Below are positions 7,750 to 57,700 of a stretch of 64,000 nucleotides of DNA, piece after piece. The notes below the pieces were generated by a model that made no database searches, was not told the DNA's origin, and worked only from the letters and a program-made list of their open reading frames with translations. How positions within the stretch are numbered: position 1 is the stretch's first letter; every line of letters begins with the position of its first letter. The DNA is from Paraphysomonas bandaiensis (taxonomy: Eukaryota; Protista; Chrysophyceae). Made by a program: the position numbers and the translations under genes. The DNA is taken from assembly GCA_965644295.1 (NCBI GenBank), contig CBFFRP010000146.1, forward strand, positions 372,001 through 436,000, given 5' to 3'.

Positions 7750-9798
7750 TTAGGCAAAATCAAATGCAGCATTCCTACGTAGTACCTTGGATTCAAATAA
7801 TTTCTCGGGGTAAAACACTGCCACCACAGTTTGCCCATTAAAAGTGCGCCCGTTGACAGCATTACGAGCCTTTGATGCACCTTCAGAGGATGTAAAAGAC
7901 ACAAATATATTCCCCACGCCACTTAGCGTGTCGCTATCGCCCCCATTGCCGCCAGGCCTTGGAATAACAATGTCACGAACAGTGCCGTAGTTGTTACACT
8001 CGTCCCCCACATCCTCCTGTAGCTCCTCATACGCCTCATCATCCTTGAGCTCTTCCACAGTAGTCATATTAGAGAGACACAGAACGGATGTTGGTCGGTG
8101 GTCACGGAGCATGTCCTGCTGGGTCGTTGCGCTTACTGCAGTGCTTCCCGCTGCTCCATTACCTTCTTTCTTCTGAGTCAACAGCACAGAGGCCATTTGT
8201 GGAGGTACACGGGTAATTGAAAGTTTAAAGTCACCTAGGGCAAGACCATTTAACCCCTGGATTGCGCTATCAGTAACGGATTTATTCTTGTACTCTAGCA
8301 CTGCTGCACCTCCTCTGGACACACTTGCATTCACTTTAATAAAATTAAATGCTCGAATCTGAAACAGAATTTATTAATGCTTTAAAACTAGCACATTGAA
8401 CAGGCATGGCAGGCAATATACCTCTCCAAAAGGTTCCAGTAGCTCTCGTACTTGGGCCTCTTCCAGAGCTTCGGGTAAATTGCTGACCATGATCACATCA
8501 GAAGAGGACGATGAGGACTCGCTACTGGAAATACCAGGAATACTACCCGTTCCAATAGCAGTCAATGCTCCGGGTACCATTCCAACACCTAAAGGAATAG
8601 AACCTAAAGCTGACAACGACGCTCCGGTTGGGGCATTAGTCTTGGGGCGTCCCACCCGCAGCTGATAAGCACCACACATTGTTCCACCAAGGTTGTTTAG
8701 ACAAGCTGATGCATCCTCCACAGTGCGAAACTCGACAAATGCATAGTGACCATCCGTACTTATCCACGCACCCACCACAGGGGGGCCAAATGGTGATGCC
8801 ACACATAGTTTCTTCTCCATCATTACTTTGTTTACAAAGTCTGTGAGCTGAGGGATCGAAATGCCGGGCGGAATATTGCCTATGTACACCTCACGCAAAA
8901 GTTTAGTCGCCTGGGACAAGGCTTGAGGGTTGGCCAACCCAGGACCACCAGGTCCTGTAAGTCCCATGCCGTTAGTGGCGTTAATAGCATGTAATCGCTG
9001 TAACGCCTCCGTAACACTAATACCAGGATTCTGTGCAATAATATCCTTCAGAGTCACGCTTGGGCGGTCATCATCTGCCTTCTTATCCGGGGACGCTTCG
9101 CGACGTCTATCACCACGGTCAGGAGAGGATTTATGGCTTCTCTCCTTATCTCGTCGATCGCGGTCTCTAGAACTTCTATCCCTGCTTCGCTCTCTGTCAC
9201 GTCGACGTCGGTCTCTGTCTCCACTGTCGCTTCTCTTTCTGTCCCTGTCCCTCCTCCTGCGCCTCTCGCGACTGTCCTCCCGGTCACGGCTACGGCGACG
9301 ATCCTCCCGATCACGGTCTCGTGACCTATCACGTCGACTCTCTCCACGACTACTGCGGGAACGACGACGCTCGCGACTGTTCTCCCTGTCACGACTCCGC
9401 TCATCCCTGCGTTTATCTTCCTTTCTTGCACTCTTCGATCTACGATCACTGTAACCATTATCATCATTCGATTCTGCATCTTCTGCTTTATCTACATCAC
9501 GACTCTTTGATCGTCTGTCTTTACTACTACGTTTCCTGTCGCGACTCTTCGATCGTCTGCTGTCTCTGTCTCTGTCTCTACTGCGATCACGTGTTTTGCT
9601 ATGATGTTTATGTTTATGTCGCTTACGTTCACGTGATTCCCCTCGTCTTGAGTCTCTGTCTTTATCTCTATGTTTCTTGTCTTTTTTACGGTGTCTGTTT
9701 GAGTCTGTATCACTGATATCTGTAGATGTTACCTTATCTTTATTGTCTGTATGTATAGAGGGACTAGAAGGCTCTTGATGATCATTGCTTTGTTGCAT
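7750..9798 (-). CDS. U2AF2: Splicing factor U2AF large subunit (U2AF65/U2AF2), 2 exons
   Basis: Long RS/RD domain, RRM1 (REVYIGNIP...YAFVEFRT), RRM2 (VIMVSNLP) and C-terminal UHM (VLCLSNM..EELKDDEAYEELQEDVGDECNNYG..GRTFNGQTV). GT-AG intron 8359-8421 joins ORFs 8374..9798 and 7750..8334 in frame (PFGE|IRAFN). Confidence 0.95.
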
Positions 9799-38342: not shown

Positions 38343-40679
38343 TCATACGCCAGAAGAGTCGACGGGACCAGTAAGTGGTTGTCTCATTGATGGTGGTGCA
38401 ACAACACACCCATTTTCTGAGGAACCGTTTGTAGCACTGCGAAAGACAGAGCTGATTACATTTCCAGTGTTTGGATGATGAATACTACTTTTCCATTGAT
38501 CGAATGACGGCACCACACCACCATCTGCAATGTCCTTCGTCTTTCGCCCTTGTCTACCCACATTACTCCTGTCTGACGGGAGAGGAGGTGTGGTACCCGC
38601 ACCCTTATGCTGTGGCTGTATGGTAGTCTGCCACTGATCGAATGACGGCACCACACCACCATCTGCAATGTCCTTCGTCTTTCGCCCTTGTCTACCCACA
38701 TTACTCCTGTCTGACGGGAGAGGAGGTGTGGTACCCGCACCCTTATGCTGTGGCTGTATGGTAGTCTGCCACTGATCGAATGACGGCACCACACCACCAT
38801 CTGCCATGTCCTTCGTCTTTCGCCCTTGTCTACCCACATTACTCCTGTCTGACGGGAGAGGAGGTGTGGTACCCGCACCCTTATGCTGTGGCTGTATGGT
38901 AGTCTGCCACTGATCGAATGACGGCACCACACCACCATCTGCAATGTCCTTCGTCTTTCGCCCTTGTCTACCCACATTACTCCTGTCTGACGGGAGAGGA
39001 GGTGTGGTACCCGCACCCTTATGCTGTGGCTGTATGGTAGTCTGCCACTGATCGAATGACGGCACCACACCACCATCTGCCATGCCCTTCGTCTTTCGCC
39101 CTTGTCTACCCACATTACTCCTGTCTGACGGGAGAGGAGGTGTGGTACCCGCACCCTTATGCTGTGGCTGTATGGTAGTCTGCCACTGATCGAATGACGG
39201 CACCACACCACCATCTGCCATGCCCTTCGTCTTTCGCCCTTGTCTACCCACATTACTCCTGTCTGACGGGAGAGGAGGTGTGGTACCCGCACCCTTATGC
39301 TGTGGCTGTATGGTAGTCTGCCACTGATCGAATGACGGCACCACACCACCATCTGCCATGCCCTTCGTCTTTCGCCCTTGTCTACCCACATTACTCCTGT
39401 CTGACGGGAGAGGAGGTGTGGTACCCGCACCCTTATGCTGTGGCTGCATGATAGTCTGCCACTGATCGAATGACGGTACCACATTCGAATCAGCACTTCC
39501 TAAGGAGAGTGGAGGTGTGCCATCTCCGCTTGAAAGATTCGTCCGAATAATGCTCTGCCAGTGACATGACGGCTCCATCTCTGACGTGCTGCAATGGTAT
39601 GGTGATTGTTGGCATCCTGACGACGACGAAGCTCTACTTTGCAAACTAGACATTCGGCGCGCGGGAGTAGGCGTGTCTCTATGTTGTCTGAAAGATGGTG
39701 AAAACACAGACGGAGGGGATTCCCCCGAAACGAAATAGGGAATCCTGACACATGTTGGTGAAGAAGGTTTATGGTTTCCGGAAACGGCGGCAGTGTCATA
39801 TGACATTGTAAAAACAGATGAGGGAGAATTGGACTCTGTGTGCCGTTTCTGATCAATTATAACATTGACAACCGCATCTTCCATCACTGTCATGACAACT
39901 TCGGATACTTCTTTGAGGACAGTTTCCTTAGGTCGGACTAATAGCCAATTGATTACCACAGCATCCACGCAAACATCAAGCAAACACCAAAAGTAGCACA
40001 CAGAGCTGGTTTGATCACCATGCGCCAACGCATGCATCACAATATTGATAATCGAAGTAGAGAGACTTAGGGTTGCTCCAATAAAGTTTTTAATTGCGAG
40101 AGTGTAGACTGTCTTAGATTCAGCAGAATACTGAAATAAAGGGTACATAAATTGAAAAATCAAAATCAGACTGAGAGAAGCGTCATATATCAGTAGTGAA
40201 ACAGATGCTATATCACGCAGTCCGATATGACAATCTCCGTCACTATCAATGTAGTATTTCCTCTCTAAAATTCCGAGAACTAACATAAAAGCGCTGGGCA
40301 GAAGTAGCACGATATTTATTACATACTGTTTCGATTGCAACCTCTTCACAGGTGTCTTGCAAAATCTATTCGTTATCCGGTGAACTTTCTCAATGAGATA
40401 TACGTATATCATTACTTTACATGTCAAGTAAAGTATGAGGCAGAACCATGACGCGGAGTTGCAATAGGCACCCTCATCTGTGCGAGAATTCATCACAGTG
40501 ACAACCGCAATTTGAGCAACAAAGATCCAACACAATATCAACACAGCGATTCCAATATAATCTGTAGCATGCATATACCCCGTAATGCGTAAAGCCATTA
40601 TACGCCACCATATCAATTGAAGGATAACTGCAAAGGAAAGACATGATAATACTACTACGGAAAGATCAACCGTCTTCAT
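38343..40679 (-). CDS. 7TM receptor-like protein A with C-terminal 46-aa tandem repeats (7 full + 1 partial), intronless, ~778 aa
   Basis: ATG at 40679 (MKTVDL). Seven hydrophobic segments, a Cys at the start of TM3 (AYCNS) and one in ECL2 (DGDCHIG), 'IYVYLIEKVH' at the end of TM3. 138-bp repeats at ~38490-39485. Confidence 0.8.
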   Translation of the reverse strand: MKTVDLSVVVLSCLSFAVILQLIWWRIMALRITGYMHATDYIGIAVLILCWIFVAQIAVVTVMNSRTDEGAYCNSASWFCLILYLTCKVMIYVYLIEKVHRITNRFCKTPVKRLQSKQYVINIVLLLPSAFMLVLGILERKYYIDSDGDCHIGLRDIASVSLLIYDASLSLILIFQFMYPLFQYSAESKTVYTLAIKNFIGATLSLSTSIINIVMHALAHGDQTSSVCYFWCLLDVCVDAVVINWLLVRPKETVLKEVSEVVMTVMEDAVVNVIIDQKRHTESNSPSSVFTMSYDTAAVSGNHKPSSPTCVRIPYFVSGESPPSVFSPSFRQHRDTPTPARRMSSLQSRASSSSGCQQSPYHCSTSEMEPSCHWQSIIRTNLSSGDGTPPLSLGSADSNVVPSFDQWQTIMQPQHKGAGTTPPLPSDRSNVGRQGRKTKGMADGGVVPSFDQWQTTIQPQHKGAGTTPPLPSDRSNVGRQGRKTKGMADGGVVPSFDQWQTTIQPQHKGAGTTPPLPSDRSNVGRQGRKTKGMADGGVVPSFDQWQTTIQPQHKGAGTTPPLPSDRSNVGRQGRKTKDIADGGVVPSFDQWQTTIQPQHKGAGTTPPLPSDRSNVGRQGRKTKDMADGGVVPSFDQWQTTIQPQHKGAGTTPPLPSDRSNVGRQGRKTKDIADGGVVPSFDQWQTTIQPQHKGAGTTPPLPSDRSNVGRQGRKTKDIADGGVVPSFDQWKSSIHHPNTGNVISSVFRSATNGSSENGCVVAPPSMRQPLTGPVDSSGV

Positions 40680-42383
40680 ATTACAATGCAGATACAACGA
40701 TTAATACTACATACTGGTATCAAGATTACAATACATTTTGTTATTGGGGTTTAATGTATCTGCTCTGTCGTATCATCAGAATATAGAGATTGAGGTCAAG
40801 TACGGTACTCATAGGGTGCTATGACGATGAAACTCTGTGGACGAAAAATGCCATAGGAAAGACATACTAGAAATACAGTGTTGGATACTGTGTATATGGT
40901 ATGTATTTGGACTACAATTGTACACTGATAGACCCTTGGGAATTCCTGCAGTCCTACATATATATGTACTGTACTGCTGTGTATAGTCTAGAAGTACGTA
41001 TAGAAGTACATACAGCCAGCTTTTTATAGGAATTCCTGTGCATACGTAACTTTCTTGCTTTGTAGGACATTCTTCTTTTTTTTTTCCTTGCCCATGTACT
41101 CTGTATATGTGGTTAAGCGCTGCAGCGGGATTGCTTGATTGCTGTATATGTACGTATCAGCATCCTTTGTATATTTTTGTTCCAAGATGCCTCTAATATT
41201 GAGACAATAATTATCTGTATTTCAGCCGTAGTTGTATTACAGTAATATATAGGAGTTTTGCTTCAATTTACTTCCGAAAAATAATCAATTTGCTGACTGC
41301 CGATATATATACCTTCAAACTCCTCATAGTTTAGGATGATATTTCAAAACCCTCTCGCCATTCTTCACACTAAATTAATATCTCAATGAGAATATTGTCT
41401 CTACACTTACTTGCTACTACTTTTCATCAATGAATAACTAATTCTTACACTAGCAGCCCTATGAAGTCATATATATCCACTGCTATAAGAATCTCATCAC
41501 TCATTCGATATTTAACATTCGACTAGTTGTAATATACATATCAGTTGATACTTAGACATATGAAGTTGTCAGATATTATATTACAAACATCATCTGGTGT
41601 TATAATCGTCATTATCTTTTGTTTAATAATATTACGTGTGACTGAACTTCGTCGAGCTGTCGATGGAATGTTTGCAAGTGATTATATTGGAATTTCTGTT
41701 CTTATACTGTCACTGTTATTCGTGGTACAGACTAGTTTGGTCTCATTCTTCATTTTTTCCACGGAAAATATAATATATTGCAGTGTTGGGTTATGGTTTT
41801 GCATAGTGCTTTACATGCTAACCAAGGTATTCATATATATATATCTGCTCGAAACAGTGCACAGAATGAGATGCCTCTTTTATAAAAAGACTACCGCTAG
41901 ATTTCACTCGAAACAGTATTGGATGAACTTGGCATTGGTACTACCGAGTTTCGGAATGCTGGTGCTGTGTTCAATGAGCAGGAAGTATAGTATGAACGAT
42001 AGTGGACACTGTCATTTCGGGTTGAAAGATCGAGCTTCGATACCTCTAATATGCTGTGATGCAATACAGAGTCTAGTTTTTGCGTGTCAATTTATGTACC
42101 CTTTATTTCAGTATTCTGACGAATCTAAGACAGTCTACGCACTCGCAATTAAAAACTTAATTGGAGCAACCCTAAGTCTCTCCACTACGTTTGTCAATCT
42201 TGTGATGCATGCGTTGGCGCATGGTGAACAAACCAGTTCTGTGTGCTACTTTTGGTGTCTGTTTGATGTTGCCGTGGATGCTGTGGTAATCAATTGGCTA
42301 TTAGTCCGACCTAAGGAAACTGTCCTCAAAGAAGTATCCGAAGTTGTCATGACAGTAATGGAAGATGCGGTTGTCAATGTCAT
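39859..42383. repeat. 296-bp inverted repeat pair (39859-40154 and 42088-42383) inside the two 7TM genes
   Basis: Manual alignment gives ~18 mismatches in 296 bp, no indels, and an 84-bp perfect run (42273-42356). Confidence 0.9.
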
Positions 42384-44133
42384 TGTTGGAACTGCAACAG
42401 AAAATCCTCCAGGTCCCATTGATACTGCTGATAGTGCTTGTTCAGAGTCGTCGTCTAATGATGTACTAGTACCGTGCTTTGTCCAAGGGAAAGCTATGCC
42501 CAATGTGCTTTCACCTTCGTGTCCAACGGTAGGAAAGTGTAAAAGTGAACCAGTCGGTGCTGCTCACTCCGGCCAGGTACGGCCACTCTGCCAGTGGAAT
42601 CACACTCCTCAGCCACAGTATACTCACAGGAGTAGAGTATCTTCACCCTCTTCTGGAAATTACAAGAGAGAAACATTGTGTGCTCAGATGAATGTTGGTA
42701 CTGGTGCAGATATGGTACCGTCATTCGATATGTGGCAGAACACACTTCAGGAGGGTGGCACCCCTTCATTCACCCCAGAAAGGAGTAGTTTGCCTTCATA
42801 TGCGAGTAAAACAAAGTGTGGTAGGAGTGCTGGTGCATTGTTGCCGTCGAAGCAATGCAATAACACTGCTCAGCCGCAACAACCATCTCACTGTAAAGCA
42901 ACTCCGTCCCACATAGGTAGACATACTACGATCACTCCTAGGTGTAAAGAGATGGGTGATGGACATGTTGGTGTCGTACCATCATTCTCTCAGTGGCAGA
43001 GCACTACCCAACCGCAACCTACTTCCGGGGATAATACTCTTCCACTTCCTCCAGACAGGAAAAATTTGGGTACACAAGAGCATAAGAAAAAAGATGGTGC
43101 ATCTTCGGATGTGGTACCCTCATTCGATCAGTGGCAGAACACTATTCAGTCACAATGCACCAGCGAAGGTTGCACCACACGACCTTTACCGAAGAAGAAT
43201 GGTATAGACACAGCAGGCAGTGAGAAGAAGGGTGGCGTGAATGCTAGCATAGTACCATCATTCTCTCAGTGGCAGAGCACTACCCAACCGCAACCTACTT
43301 CCGGGGATAATACTCCTCCACTTCCTCCAGACAGGAAAAATTTGGGTACACAAGAGCATAAGAAAAAAGATGGTGCATCTTCGGATGTGGTACCCTCATT
43401 CGATCAGTGGCAGAACACTATTCAGTCACAATGCACCAGCGAAGGTTGCACCACACGACCTTTACCGAAGAAGAATGGTATAGACACAGCAGGCAGTGAG
43501 AAGAAGGGTGGCGTGAATGCTAGCATAGTACCATCATTCTCTCAGTGGCAGAGCACTACCCAACCGCAACCTACTTCCGGGGATAATACTCTTCCACTTC
43601 CTCCAGACAGGAAAAATTTGGGTACACAAGAGCATAAGAAAAAAGATGGTGCATCTTCGGATGTGGTACCCTCATTCGATCAGTGGCAGAACACTATTCA
43701 GTCACAATGCACCAGCGAAGGTTGCACCACACGACCTTTACCGAAGAAGAATGGTATAGACACAGCAGGCAGTGAGAAGAAGGGTGGCGTGAATGCTAGC
43801 ATAGTACCATCATTCTCTCAGTGGCAGAGCACTACCCAACCGCAACCTACTTCCGGGGATAATACTCCTCCACTTCCTCCAGACAGGAAAAATTTGGGTA
43901 CACAAGAGCATAAGAAAAAAGATGGTGCATCTTCGGATGTGGTACCCTCATTCGATCAGTGGCAGAACACTATTCAGTCACAATGTACCAGCGAAGGTTG
44001 CACCACACGACCTTTACCGAAGAAGAATGGTATAGACACAGCAGGCAGTGAGAAGAAGGGTGGCGTGAATGCTAGCATAGTACCATCATTCTCTCAGTGG
44101 CAGAGCACTGTTCAGTCGCAACGTATTGGCTGA
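41560..44133 (+). CDS. 7TM receptor-like protein B (paralogue of A) with C-terminal 2x46-aa repeats (4 dimers + partial), intronless, ~857 aa
   Basis: ATG at 41560 (MKLSDI). Same TM/Cys pattern (IYCSV, SGHCHFG, IYIYLLETVH). 276-bp repeat: GTACCATCATTCTC at 42976, 43252 and onward. Confidence 0.8.
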   Translation: MKLSDIILQTSSGVIIVIIFCLIILRVTELRRAVDGMFASDYIGISVLILSLLFVVQTSLVSFFIFSTENIIYCSVGLWFCIVLYMLTKVFIYIYLLETVHRMRCLFYKKTTARFHSKQYWMNLALVLPSFGMLVLCSMSRKYSMNDSGHCHFGLKDRASIPLICCDAIQSLVFACQFMYPLFQYSDESKTVYALAIKNLIGATLSLSTTFVNLVMHALAHGEQTSSVCYFWCLFDVAVDAVVINWLLVRPKETVLKEVSEVVMTVMEDAVVNVIVGTATENPPGPIDTADSACSESSSNDVLVPCFVQGKAMPNVLSPSCPTVGKCKSEPVGAAHSGQVRPLCQWNHTPQPQYTHRSRVSSPSSGNYKRETLCAQMNVGTGADMVPSFDMWQNTLQEGGTPSFTPERSSLPSYASKTKCGRSAGALLPSKQCNNTAQPQQPSHCKATPSHIGRHTTITPRCKEMGDGHVGVVPSFSQWQSTTQPQPTSGDNTLPLPPDRKNLGTQEHKKKDGASSDVVPSFDQWQNTIQSQCTSEGCTTRPLPKKNGIDTAGSEKKGGVNASIVPSFSQWQSTTQPQPTSGDNTPPLPPDRKNLGTQEHKKKDGASSDVVPSFDQWQNTIQSQCTSEGCTTRPLPKKNGIDTAGSEKKGGVNASIVPSFSQWQSTTQPQPTSGDNTLPLPPDRKNLGTQEHKKKDGASSDVVPSFDQWQNTIQSQCTSEGCTTRPLPKKNGIDTAGSEKKGGVNASIVPSFSQWQSTTQPQPTSGDNTPPLPPDRKNLGTQEHKKKDGASSDVVPSFDQWQNTIQSQCTSEGCTTRPLPKKNGIDTAGSEKKGGVNASIVPSFSQWQSTVQSQRIG

Positions 44134-44689
44134 GATTAGACCATGTATTCTTGTCCTGCTGGTGTGGATACTTTAAGAGGATTCACAAGTTTAGTAAGTG
44201 TGCTGCTACAATAATGTCTCTGGCTCAGTGGCAGAACACTCTTCGCTTGAAACACATCACATATATTTATATCTTTGCTTTGTACACATCTGAGATTACT
44301 CCTTGTGAGAGCACAATTGTTGAGTACCTACGTTACTATGTTAGAGGTAGAGTTGTTATAGGGTGTTCGTTTTTGTTTATTTCTTAGATATATTGGGTAT
44401 ATATTGAATTTAGGTGGTGCAGTAATTTTTGACATGTGGCACCCCGCACCCGTCATCTATACACATTCCGAGCCGCTTTGTTGAGTGTTGCTTATAGTAG
44501 GCAATTAAATACTTCAGTTCAATGTTTTGAACTATAGCCGTTGGTGAAGAGTACGTGAGTTAAAGGCAGTATTATATGAATTCAATGAAATGATAATAAT
44601 GTATTTTAGACTATCTGAAATATTGTAAGCCTAACAGTATGGAAATTAGCAATGTAAGATGAGAAATAATTGTCACAATTTTGATTATA

Positions 44690-45072: not shown

Positions 45073-45305
45073 AAAAATATTTTGAATAGAATAAATATTT
45101 TTGATAAATTATTTTGAAAAAATATTTTGAATAGAATAAATATTTTTGATAAATTATTTTGAAAAAATATTTTGAATAGAATAAATATTTTTGATAAATT
45201 ATTTTGAAAAAATATTTTGAATAGAATAAATTATTTTGAAAAAATATTTTGAATAGAATAAATATTTTTGATAAATTATTTTGAAAAAATATTTTGAATA
45301 GAAAC
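45073..45305. repeat. AT-rich 45-bp minisatellite, ~5 copies (one shortened)
   Basis: GAATAGAATAAA at 45084, 45129, 45174, 45219 and 45251. Confidence 0.9.
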
Positions 45306-45789
45306 TGGCATTATGGCACTGGATTTTTATAACATAAACTATATAATAAATTTTACATCATCACTACACCATCATCATCACGATCATCATCACTGTTACA
45401 ACACCACCATCATCATCACCACCACAACTGGCATTATGGCACTGGCTTTTTATAACATAAACTATATAATAAATTTTATTTTATAACTTTTTCTAATTTT
45501 CATAAAAGCCAAAATGCCAGAAAGCCAAAAAGCCAAAACTATATTTTTATTTTATTATAAGATAATTATTTAATATTATATAAAGTAATTAATTTTTATT
45601 TAAAGTATAGTATTATTAATATAATTATATAGGCCATAATAATTATATTTAAAGATAGAGTGAAAAGGAAGAAAGATTGAGTGAAAAGGAAAGAGTAATA
45701 AAACGAAGTTTTATTACGATACGAGAGCCTTTCTGGCTCAGGAAGAATGCCTAAGCGGCAAGAGCGACCCCTCGGCCCTCCGCCTCTCT

Positions 45790-54753: not shown

Positions 54754-57700
54754 ATTGTTCCACCTTTTGAATTAGAGGTAGATAGGGATGCCTGGGAACA
54801 ACCAAAACATTGTGGTCCGCCACGAAAGATGGATCGAGTACGACAGTATGCTTGTAAAAAGCAAATCGATACATTTGTGGAGCATGGAATAATACAACCA
54901 AGTACGGCTCCTTATTATAGCCAGGTATTATTAGTTCCCAAACCAAATGATAAATGGCGATTCTGTGTAGACTATAAAAGTCTAAACAAGCACACACAGA
55001 GGGAACGTTGGCCAATACCTAACATCAAAGAAATGTTAGAACGTATTGGGTCTAAGAAACCCAAATACTTCATAATTCTGGATTTAGTATCTGGTTATTA
55101 CCAGGCTAAAATTTCAGAGTACTCGAGGAAGTGGACGGCATTTATAACCTTCTGGGGAGTATTCGAATGGCTCCGACTACCCATGGGTTTGAGTGGTGCT
55201 CCATCATACTTTCAACGAGTATTAACAACAATTGTGCTTGCCGGGTTGATTATGTTCATATGTGAATTATATCTAGATGACCTGATTATATATGCTTCTA
55301 CAGAAGATGAACTAATTGAAAATTACGTTAAAGTTCTAGAACGCTTCAGGAAATACAATGTTTACATTAATCCTGAGAAAGTGAAAATAGGAGAGTCCGA
55401 AGTACAATATGTAGGACATACTCTAAATGAGGAAGGGTTACACTTTACTAGAGAACGTCTGGATAGTGTATTAAATTTCCCAAAGCCTGAAACTATGAAG
55501 GGTCTAAAATCTTTCCTCGGATTGGCAAATTATTTTCGGGATCACGTGCACAACCACTCCTTAGTGGTGAGACCGTTAAATAAAATGCTTCTCAACTATC
55601 ATAGACGTAAACGTCTACAATGGACAGAGGATGCCAATGAAGCATTTGAAAAGATCAAATTGATGATCCATGAATGTCCAACATTATTTTTCATTGATGA
55701 CGAGTCACCAATATATTTATTGACCGATGCATCTGATTATGGAATAGGAGCATACCTCTACCAAGTAGTAGATGGTGTAGAACGTCCAATCGGATTTCTC
55801 AGTAAAACATTCGATGAAAGAATGATGAATTGGGATACACCTCAGAAAGAAGGATATGCTATATACTATGCCTTAGATAAATGGGACTACCTATTAAGGT
55901 ATAGATACTTTACGATCAAAACAGATCATAAAAATATTACTCAGTTGAGAACTGATTACGCTAAGGATAAGAAAGTTCAGCGATGGTTGAAATGTTTCCA
56001 AGCATATGATTATGATCTATGTGATATTAAAGGATCTGATAATGTTGTTGCTGATGCATTTAGTAGACTATGTGCATTAGAATCTAAAATGGAAACAAAA
56101 TGTGCTTCCCTAATTCCCGATATTAAAGTTCCAAACAAGGAATGGGAAATTATTAAAAGATTTCATAACAATGTTACAGGTCATCATGGTATTGATCGTA
56201 CAATACAAAAATTACGAGACAATGGTCATAAATGGTCAAAGCAAGGGGCACATGTGACAAAATTTATTAAAACTTGTCCTTGTTGTCAAAAGATGAGTAG
56301 AATTAAACCAATAATTAATGCTCATCCCTTTACTGTCTCAACATATGGCCCGATGCAAAGAATAGCAGTGGATTTTATTCAGAGTCTGCATCCAGATGAG
56401 GATGGATACACTAATATATTAGTGATTATCGATTCTTTTTCTAGGTGGGTAGAATTAATCCCTACTAAGAATCTCACTGCCATGGCGGCGGCAAAGGGAT
56501 TGCTTCAACACCTGGGTAGATATGGAGCACCTATTGAGATTCATTCGGATCTTGGACCAGCATTTGTGGATGATTTAACAAAATCATTGATAGAAATGGT
56601 TGGAAGTAATCAATCATTTTCGATGGCGTATTCTAAAGAAGAAAATGCTATAGTTGAACGTGCTAATAAAGAAATTTTAAGGCACTTAAGGAATATTATA
56701 TTTGATAAAAATGTACTAAATAATTGGTCAATGTATCTACCTTTAGTACAAAGAATTATGAATTCTTCTAAACATAGAAGCACCGGCGTTACTCCCGCTA
56801 GTATTCTATTTGGGAATGCAGTAGATTTAGATAAAAGTTTATTCATTGAACACAATGAGTACTTGGACGGGAACGAACAAAAGCTATCACATTGGATAGA
56901 TAGAATACAAAAGGTTCAGTCCACTATTATGGATATTGCAAGACGAAATCTTCGCAAACATGATGAAATCCACATGGCAACTGCACCAAATATACAAACA
57001 AAAGAATTTCCAATAAATTCTTATGTGTTAGTTGAGCATAGACAAAATGCTTTACGTCCTGGACCGGCAAGTAAGTTATTACCATATCTTAAAGGTCCAA
57101 TGCGAGTAGTCAATGTTATTGGAGATAAATATACTCTTCAAGATATTGTTACTAAACGTAATAAAGACTATCATATAAAGAAATTAAGGGAATTTAATTA
57201 CGATCCCTCTACTATTGACCCCTTACAAGTGGCATGTAAAGATGGTGGAAACTTTTATGCTATTGACCATATTTCAAAAATAAAAGGTCGAGCTAAAGGT
57301 CCGAAAAGTCAAATAAAATTTCTAGTACATTGGATAGGGTATGAAAAACCTACATGGGAACCATGGGCTAACGTTAGAAAAACGTATGCTCTACAAAATT
57401 TCCTAACTCAACATCCTGATGAAAATGTAAGAAATTTACTACCTCGAAATGTGGTTTATTCTTCTGATGAAGAAGATTAATAACAAAGTTTACAGAATTG
57501 AGTGTCAATATAACACATTAACACATCAATTATAAGGGGAGGTAGTGTAGGACTATCCACTTACATATAGAATATATACGTGTACATGTCCTGTATTATA
57601 TGATTAGTAGTACAGTACTGTATTGTATACGTGTACCATGTAGTTAGGAATACAAACTGTAGGGAATGTGATTGTTGTTGGGATTAGCAATAGCCGTTGA

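Follow-up and report, generated by a model that had tools for sequence, protein, structure and literature searches.

Two genes with predicted seven-transmembrane (7TM) products lie head to head in the genome of Paraphysomonas bandaiensis, and one internal block is nearly identical in both and forms an inverted repeat around their common upstream region. The question raised by this locus is how two otherwise clearly diverged genes came to share such a block. The original prediction for the window, which is the whole analysed stretch of 64,000 nucleotides, was that the block is at least a gene-conversion tract, and that a crossover within it might flip the intervening segment in the manner of a bacterial shufflon. 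The host is a marine flagellate, a Paraphysomonas-type chrysophyte (stramenopiles). The features of the locus, numbered from the first letter of the window, are:

38343-40679, minus strand: gene A, an intronless ORF of 778 amino acids from the first ATG, with a predicted GPCR-like 7TM domain and a repeat tail
38479-39606, minus strand: tandem 138-bp repeats of the A tail from a repeat search, the units being 96-97% identical to each other
39859-40155, minus strand: A arm of the probable conversion tract, ORF codons ~182-280, encoding the end of TM5, TM6, TM7 and helix 8
40156-42086, no strand: spacer of 1931 bp between the arms, composed of the TM1-5 half of A (40156-40679), the TM1-5 half of B (41560-42086) and the 880-bp intergenic region
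41154-41306, plus strand: MITE-like dispersed element of ~153 bp that has inserted between the two genes, with the terminal inverted repeat GTATCRGCA...TGCCGATAC
41560-44133, plus strand: gene B, an intronless ORF of 857 amino acids from the first ATG, with a paralogous 7TM domain and a repeat tail
42087-42383, plus strand: B arm of the probable conversion tract, 93.9% identical to the A arm with no indel, its helix-8 part including a perfect run of 84 bp
42950-44141, plus strand: tandem 276-bp repeats of the B tail (two 138-bp sub-units), from a repeat search

The expected pair of intronless, divergent 7TM paralogues with a shared upstream region of about 880 bp was confirmed by the ORFs, by the 880-bp gap from ATG to ATG and, for the 7TM part, by AlphaFold2 and Foldseek. 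The gene coordinates start from the first ATG; the full ORFs cover 38343-40697 on the minus strand and 41545-44133 on the plus strand. In gene A the 7TM domain occupies residues ~1-275 and is followed by a predicted cytoplasmic tail with eight copies of a 138-bp (46-aa) VVPSFDQWQ repeat, and the tail of gene B has four copies of a 276-bp unit made up of two alternating 46-aa VVPSF[SD]QWQ units. The MITE-like element between the genes is found in more than 40 copies across the genome, with 85-94% identity. A sigma-70 promoter and terminator scan of the intergenic region gave nothing above shuffled sequences, and its model is irrelevant to a eukaryotic host.

The AlphaFold2 model (pLDDT 91.2, pTM 0.86) displays seven long helices, a short eighth helix and a β-hairpin between TM4 and TM5, the helices being placed at residues 3-33, 38-66, 70-106, 117-138, 156-184, 189-218, 225-247, and 252-269. 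When it was compared to the PDB using Foldseek, the top 50 matches were all GPCRs of class C and class A (E from 4e-4, TM-score 0.41-0.58). As judged from the model, the domain of A and B has a GPCR-like fold, with seven TM helices and a helix 8, similar to solved GPCR structures. C73 at the start of TM3 and C150 in the TM4-TM5 hairpin are invariant in an alignment of 40 sequences, and their placement makes them a candidate TM3-ECL2 disulfide pair.

In this model the shared block begins in the final turns of TM5 and ends with helix 8, as had been proposed. An inverted-repeat search placed the arms at 39854-40238 and 42004-42388 with 85% identity, and blastn trims them to 297 bp at 94%, so that the indel-free inverted repeat with its 84-bp perfect run and 1931-bp spacer was recovered as first described. 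Pairwise alignment of the arms gives 18 mismatches in 297 bp, with the reading frame kept and with sharp borders. The identity between A and B steps sharply at codon 182. Upstream of the block it is about 52-55% at the nucleotide level and 36% at third positions, inside the block it is 91-96% and 90-92%, respectively, and in the tail the nucleotide identity is 40%. The maximum chi-square for a block with two breakpoints is 153.8, compared to at most 18.5 in 200 shuffles. The 84-bp run is mildly longer than expected given 18 mismatches in 297 bp (P ~0.04), so the tract may have arisen in two separate events, or additional constraint may act on its helix-8 part.

Protein constraint alone, as was also argued originally, does not explain this identity, since the low dS is confined to the block and gives way to high values on either side. 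Between A and B synonymous sites are saturated in the head (pS 0.82) as well as in the tail (pS 0.78), while dS in the tract is 0.136 and 0.116 (about 0.13); along the genes it is low solely inside the block and not equally low over the TM region. The saturation of synonymous sites in TM1-5 and in the tails shows that A and B diverged long ago, and that the ~300 bp from the end of TM5 to helix 8 were homogenised after this divergence. The claim that most of the residual differences change amino acids holds by count (~12 non-synonymous and 8 synonymous), but per site dN is lower than dS, the 5' part of the tract having a dN of 0.08 and a dS of 0.14, and the 3' part 0.012 and 0.12, respectively.

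Trees of the head and of the block are incongruent. In the head, B groups with the unlinked gene C both for protein (91/95) and for DNA (94/96), and a clade of A and B is rejected (p-AU 0.036 and 0.021, respectively). In the DNA tree of the tract A groups with B (93/97), and the A-B path length is 0.076 vs 1.15 in the head. When it comes to the unlinked paralogues, the 5' 189 bp of the tract are 55-67% identical to them (third positions 32-44%), and the 3' 114 bp encoding helix 8 are 79-88% identical among the closer members A-F and 62-73% identical to G and I. Conservation of the block in all unlinked family members, which would speak against a local conversion, is thus found for the last 114 bp alone, and the 5' 189 bp are not conserved. 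The minimal proposal of a conversion tract is well supported by the dS being low only inside the block, by the incongruent trees and by the unconserved 5' part. The block very probably arose by interparalogue (non-allelic) gene conversion between two 7TM paralogues that are old and adjacent and lie head to head. Gene conversion as such is a well-known process.

The genome encodes 11 members of the family, and E and F on contig C393 are its only other head-to-head pair. These two genes have an inverted tract of 329 bp with 95.4% identity and a spacer of 2.06 kb. Relative to the A/B tract it is shifted in the 3' direction and covers helix 8 and the proximal tail, not TM5-TM6; both tracts overlap the helix-8 coding segment that is conserved across the family. 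An all-against-all blastn of the 11 members found high-identity tracts in these two pairs only, besides the near-identical D/E copies (dS 0.02-0.04). The E/F tract is an independent replicate of that in A/B. Two independent tracts in the only two head-to-head pairs of the family fit the view that close linkage and a conserved helix-8 seed drive conversion. Contig C384 was considered as an alternative arrangement of E/F and rejected: it matches gene E and the 230 bp upstream of it in collinear order and is no inversion. Past this part come ~1.1 kb without a match elsewhere in the assembly and then transposon sequence of high copy number.

The conversion may have started with a break in one copy, for which the neighbouring copy served as repair template, through synthesis-dependent strand annealing or heteroduplex repair. 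Pairing was probably nucleated in the helix-8 coding segment, given its strong conservation across the closer members. The transfer probably went from B to A, as weakly suggested by the head of B being sister to the unlinked C and by the shared tract being closest to C. Donor polarisation with outgroups at the 20 tract sites that differ between A and B gave no signal (34 vs 31 matches). About 6% differences have accumulated since (dS ~0.13), so frequent recombination is not keeping the two copies of the tract alike. That the arms form an inverted repeat simply follows from the divergent orientation of the two genes, and the arrangement is not a programmed switch. A rare inversion by homologous recombination is possible, as the geometry in principle allows it.

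If inversion were active or recurrent, a crossover in the 297-bp arms would flip the 1.93-kb head-promoter-head segment and join each TM1-5 head to either tail, giving a mixed population. The geometry permits this, the E/F pair has nearly the same geometry (329-bp arms, 2.06-kb spacer), and both tracts overlap the same helix-8 segment. Any crossover would also be in frame; this part of the shufflon proposal stands, but it is automatic for homologous codons and no evidence of design. Where recombination maintains inverted repeats, their identity usually exceeds 99%, and a divergence of 6% is a strong barrier to homeologous recombination. The arms here are just 94% identical, and their dS of ~0.13 is about five times the divergence of the D/E copies. 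Nor was any tyrosine or serine recombinase domain found in a Pfam scan of ten large ORFs in the window, a scan at the ORF level that could miss spliced genes. It did detect a Ty3-type retroelement pol (RT, RNase H, integrase) at 54829-57480, PT-repeat ORFs and Arp2/3 p34, and the integrase nearest to the gene pair is the one in this retroelement, ~10 kb away. The assembly contains one copy of the spacer in one orientation, and blastn against it found neither a second haplotig nor the opposite orientation of the locus. A past swap of heads and tails was likewise rejected, as the proximal tail of A groups with D/E/F (59-62% nt) rather than with C (46%), the sister of the B head. Searches of protein databases with the N-terminal domain, with a piece spanning head, tract and tail, and with the whole protein (region 100-340) brought up transcripts of the paralogues C and G only; transcripts of H are present as well, but no peptide of A, of B or of a chimera was found. 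With A and B themselves absent, the missing chimeras are uninformative. Protein A was not on record in a lookup of encoding contigs, and an exact 35-nt pattern from the perfect run had no match in metagenome contigs. Swapping would moreover add little diversity, as both tails share the VVPSFxQWQ repeats. Neither a nearby recombinase nor near-identical arms, as would be seen with a programmed invertible cassette, are found here, and the proposed shufflon-like switch is unsupported: the arms are diverged, the scanned ORFs and the assembly offer no recombinase and a single orientation, and there is no trace of a swap. Active inversion is therefore unlikely. We consider it just as doubtful that the ~300-bp tracts in A/B and E/F are substrates of occasional reciprocal crossover, with orientation polymorphism, chimeric receptors and the helix-8 segment as a shared exchange point. 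Programmed DNA inversion switching eukaryotic receptors would be remarkable if true, and finds no support here.

It is more improbable still that selection on the nucleotides has kept the identity, for example because the arms carry a conserved cis element, or because a transcript reading through both of them folds into a hairpin RNA or dsRNA with a regulatory role in the family. The helix-8 dS between unlinked members is indeed lowered too (0.66-0.76 for A/B vs E/F) and saturated elsewhere, but this estimate comes from just ~27 synonymous sites, no other member has conserved the 5' two-thirds of the A-B tract, the E/F tract spans a different region and no transcript is known over both arms. 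Least probable of all is an assembly or polishing artefact in which reads of one paralogue corrected the other in the conserved part. Nothing speaks directly for it, and although short reads could cross-map between paralogues in the helix-8 part, where these are similar enough, the 5' part of the tract would have been too diverged for it, as judged by the 55-67% identity in other paralogues. The 18 clean differences, the kept frame, the lack of indels, the sharp borders and the independent tract in E/F also argue against an artefact. Peptides from the MMETSP1103 transcriptome match the genome-encoded C and G by 100%, which suggests that the assembly is sound.

Gene conversion between paralogues has parallels elsewhere. 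Interlocus conversion is found in Drosophila hsp70Aa/Ab, and arm-to-arm conversion in the palindromes of Y chromosomes. For adjacent inverted paralogues, conversion tracts of hundreds of bp are documented for instance in the hsp16 and hsp70 inverted pairs of C. elegans (PMC3966223). The A/B pair resembles these in several respects: the paralogues lie close together in head-to-head orientation, the sharply bounded tract is a few hundred bp long, dS rises from low values within it to high values beyond it, and the trees are incongruent. It differs in that homogenisation is limited to part of the coding region, the rest being saturated at synonymous sites, and in that the tract has aged (6% diverged), which points to episodic conversion and not to continuous concerted evolution; in addition the pair belongs to an uncharacterised gene family and is found in a chrysophyte. 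Partial conversion also occurs among clustered chemoreceptor and GPCR genes, such as the olfactory receptor clusters of primates. A and B are similar mosaics of homogenised and diverged helices, but have no sequence relationship to these receptors, and the pair is inverted and not a tandem cluster. The bacterial invertible cassettes comprise the shufflons (Rci/sfx of IncI plasmids) and the systems of the Hin/Gin/Cin invertases. The likeness to shufflons is one of formal geometry alone, with inverted repeats in coding sequence, placed such that inversion would swap the C-termini in frame. A and B are eukaryotic, have no dedicated recombinase among the ORFs scanned and no short specific crossover sites, have arms that are ordinary diverged homologous coding sequence, and display no orientation variants in the assembly or chimeric products in database searches.

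The pair is thus a clean, textbook-grade case of interparalogue gene conversion over part of a gene, from the little-studied chrysophyte stramenopiles, and an ordinary kind of finding. For annotators and phylogeneticists it means that trees of this receptor family should be built on TM1-5 only. When it comes to family membership, Pfam assigned no family to proteins A, B or ten homologues, the matches of A and B being spurious, below threshold or driven by the repeats. Their named relatives are 'hypothetical' or 'transmembrane protein' entries of Agaricomycete fungi, and the Atlas clusters carry no family. On sequence, A and B would accordingly be placed outside the curated GPCR families. The family is possibly the more useful lead, being a confidently folding GPCR-like 7TM domain that lacks a Pfam model and is common to Agaricomycete and other fungi; in A and B this domain is joined to tails of repeated VVPSFxQWQ motifs.

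Genes A and B, two paralogous seven-transmembrane (7TM) genes, point outward from a shared region with an ATG-to-ATG gap of 880 bp, and both reading frames are unbroken. The features of this part of the window are:

16155-36652, minus strand, giant ORFs of 4666, 1002 and 1186 aa, with a very strong GC skew (~0.54)
38343-40679, minus strand, gene A, ORF of 778 aa counted from the first ATG
41560-44133, plus strand, gene B, ORF of 857 aa
39859-39972 and 42270-42383, helix-8 coding segment of A and B, also found in paralogues C-F
38479-39606 (A) and 42950-44141 (B), tail repeats, also present in genes C, G and I
41154-41306, MITE-like element of ~153 bp in the A/B intergenic region, with 9-bp terminal inverted repeats GTATCRGCA / TGCCGATAC
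45073-45329, AT-rich tandem array of a 45-bp unit, AAAAATATTTTGAATAGAATAAATATTTTTGATAAATTATTTTGA, ~0.9 kb downstream of gene B
54829-57480, plus strand, open Ty3/gypsy-type retroelement pol of 883 aa, with RT, RNase H, and integrase zinc-binding and core domains

The MITE-like element has more than 40 copies genome-wide (85-94% identity). The two 3' giant ORFs, which were the two scanned, matched the Pfam PT (Pro-Thr) repeat dozens of times (E 1e-134), and a mucin-like giant gene adjoins gene A.

A and B share an inverted tract of 297 bp (39859-40155 vs 42087-42383) that displays 93.9% identity, no indels and a perfect run of 84 bp. It was recovered in three ways, by repeat search, by blastn and by MAFFT alignment. 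In the structural model it spans the final turns of TM5, TM6, TM7, and helix 8, and the block is as originally described. The codon-wise identity shows a step at codon 182. In the TM1-5 head the two genes are ~55% identical (36% at third positions), in the block 91-96% (90-92%), and in the tail beyond codon 280 only 40% (31%). A maximum chi-square analysis gave 153.8 for a two-breakpoint block, compared to at most 18.5 in 200 shuffles.

That the block is the result of gene conversion, as was also proposed in the original prediction, is supported by a low dS limited to the block, by discordant trees, and by the lack of conservation of its 5' part. Using the Nei-Gojobori method, synonymous sites were found to be saturated outside the block (pS 0.82 in the head and 0.78 in the tail), while within the block dS is 0.136 for the 5' part and 0.116 for the 3' part. 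The TM1-5 tree joins B to the unlinked gene C as its sister (support 91/95 for protein and 94/96 for DNA), and an A+B clade is rejected by the AU test (p 0.036 for protein and 0.021 for DNA). In the block tree, A is sister to B (93/97), and the A-B path length is 0.076, compared to 1.15 in the head. Conservation of the block in all unlinked family members would argue against local conversion, and such conservation is seen only for the 3' 114 bp, which encode helix 8 (VDAVVINWLL.RPKETVLKEVSEVVMTVMEDAVVNVII). This segment is 79-88% identical within A-F and 62-73% identical to G and I, with dN among A-F of 0.012-0.066. The 5' 189 bp are 55-67% identical to the unlinked members (third positions 32-44%). 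Protein constraint thus accounts for some of the identity at the 3' end; the remainder is attributed to conversion. The helix-8 dS between A/B and E/F is 0.66-0.76, based on only ~27 synonymous sites and below the saturated remainder; this could reflect either older inter-locus conversion or constraint at the nucleotide level.

The assembly (62.5 Mb, 669 contigs) encodes 11 members of this family. The only other head-to-head pair is E/F on contig C393:

C393:6677-7522, minus strand, gene E
C393:8187-9035, plus strand, gene F
C393:6498-6825 vs 8887-9214, E/F inverted tract of 329 bp, 95.4% identity, spacer of 2.06 kb

The E/F tract contains helix 8 (100% identical, dS 0) and reaches ~70 codons into the proximal tail (dS 0.16). 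The region encoding the end of TM5 and TM6, which belongs to the A-B tract, lies outside the E/F tract and is 58% identical and saturated. All-against-all blastn of the family members revealed no further high-identity tract apart from the D/E copy, and none is found in the tandem pair G/I on contig C199 or in the convergent neighbours F and C. The tracts are thus confined to the two head-to-head pairs, which are the closest-spaced neighbours of the family. The helix-8 segment is inside both tracts and might plausibly act as a homology seed. The 9078-bp contig C384 carries gene D, which is 98-99% identical to gene E (dS 0.02-0.04). Collinearity with the E locus is lost 230 bp upstream of D, and is followed by ~1.1 kb that matches nothing else in the assembly and then by repeats, namely elements of 2.27 and 0.67 kb that each have many copies of 99-100% identity. 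This contig is either a haplotig that has received TE insertions, or a duplicate of very recent origin.

Given that B pairs with C in the head tree, and that the A-B tract is nearer to C (66-67% identity, dN 0.21-0.23) than to D, E, and F (54-60%; dN 0.375 against E and 0.44-0.49 against F), B would be the likelier donor. The 20 sites differing between A and B show no polarity (34 vs 31 outgroup matches). Five differences are found within 15 bp (alignment codons 273-277) directly before the perfect run, and here A has E/F-like and B has C-like residues; the tract could thus consist of two patches or include an island that escaped conversion. For the perfect run, the deviation from expectation is only mild (P ~0.04). 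The tract dS (~0.13) exceeds the D/E value about fivefold, and the exchange therefore appears to be neither recent nor continuous.

The original prediction further suggested a shufflon-like switch, where a crossover in the arms flips the 1931-bp spacer (40156-42086) and trades heads and tails. That such a crossover would be in frame was given no weight, since a crossover between homologous codons always is. The arms differ by 6%, and the spacer is present in the assembly as one copy in one orientation. A Pfam scan of 10 large ORFs in the window identified no recombinase; the matches were the PT-repeat ORFs, the Ty3-type pol ~10 kb away, and Arp2/3 p34. A past swap with B would have left the proximal tail of A nearer to C than to D/E/F, but the opposite is seen (46% vs 59-62%). 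Large protein-database searches returned no A, B or chimeric peptide, and an exact pattern from the perfect run had no match in metagenome contigs. A swap would also change little, as the same VVPSFxQWQ motif is repeated in both tails. The switch is thus unsupported, and a rare inversion by ordinary homologous recombination is unlikely. The features that define shufflon-type systems include a nearby recombinase and near-identical arms; the A/B arms are not near-identical, and no recombinase was identified among the 10 ORFs scanned. The pair is more like the hsp16 and hsp70 pairs of C. elegans, which exemplify the well-documented conversion between adjacent inverted paralogues, where tract lengths range from tens to hundreds of bp (PMC3966223). 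Homogenisation of A and B is an ordinary process, and the tract adds a further lineage and gene family to a mechanism that is already known.

The chief remaining value of the locus lies in an uncharacterised GPCR-like family with repeat tails. Neither A nor B matches any Pfam family. An exhaustive HMMER search of a 1.8-billion-protein library with residues 1-283 of A gave 594 relatives (E ≤ 1e-3). Those named relatives that were looked up come from Agaricomycete fungi, where they are annotated as "hypothetical" or "transmembrane" proteins, the relatives checked lack Pfam domains as well, and Atlas clusters of the protein family also name Mucoromycota and Ascomycota. AlphaFold2, run with an alignment of 40 sequences, gave a confident model (pLDDT 91.2, pTM 0.86) that displays seven long helices, a β-hairpin joining helices 4 and 5, and a short helix 8. 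All of the 50 best Foldseek matches in the PDB are GPCRs (E from 4e-4, TM-score 0.41-0.58). Given this model and these matches, the predicted domain may justifiably be called GPCR-like 7TM at the level of fold. Among the invariant residues are two cysteines (C73 and C150), positioned as in the TM3-ECL2 disulfide of GPCRs, and a glutamate (E97) at the cytoplasmic end of TM3. The cytoplasmic tails of most members carry tandem 46-aa units around a V/A-P-S/T-F-D/S-Q-W-Q motif, with gene-specific unit structure and copy number (8 × 138 bp in A, 4 × 276 bp in B). Gene I is 83% identical to a transcript peptide of MMETSP1103 (Paraphysomonas, taxid 36769) in a repeat-rich alignment, H is 99.3% identical, and C and G each have a stretch that peptides from the same source match at 100%. 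The assembly thus derives from this chrysophyte or from a strain very close to it, and the C and G matches show that repeat-tailed genes are transcribed.
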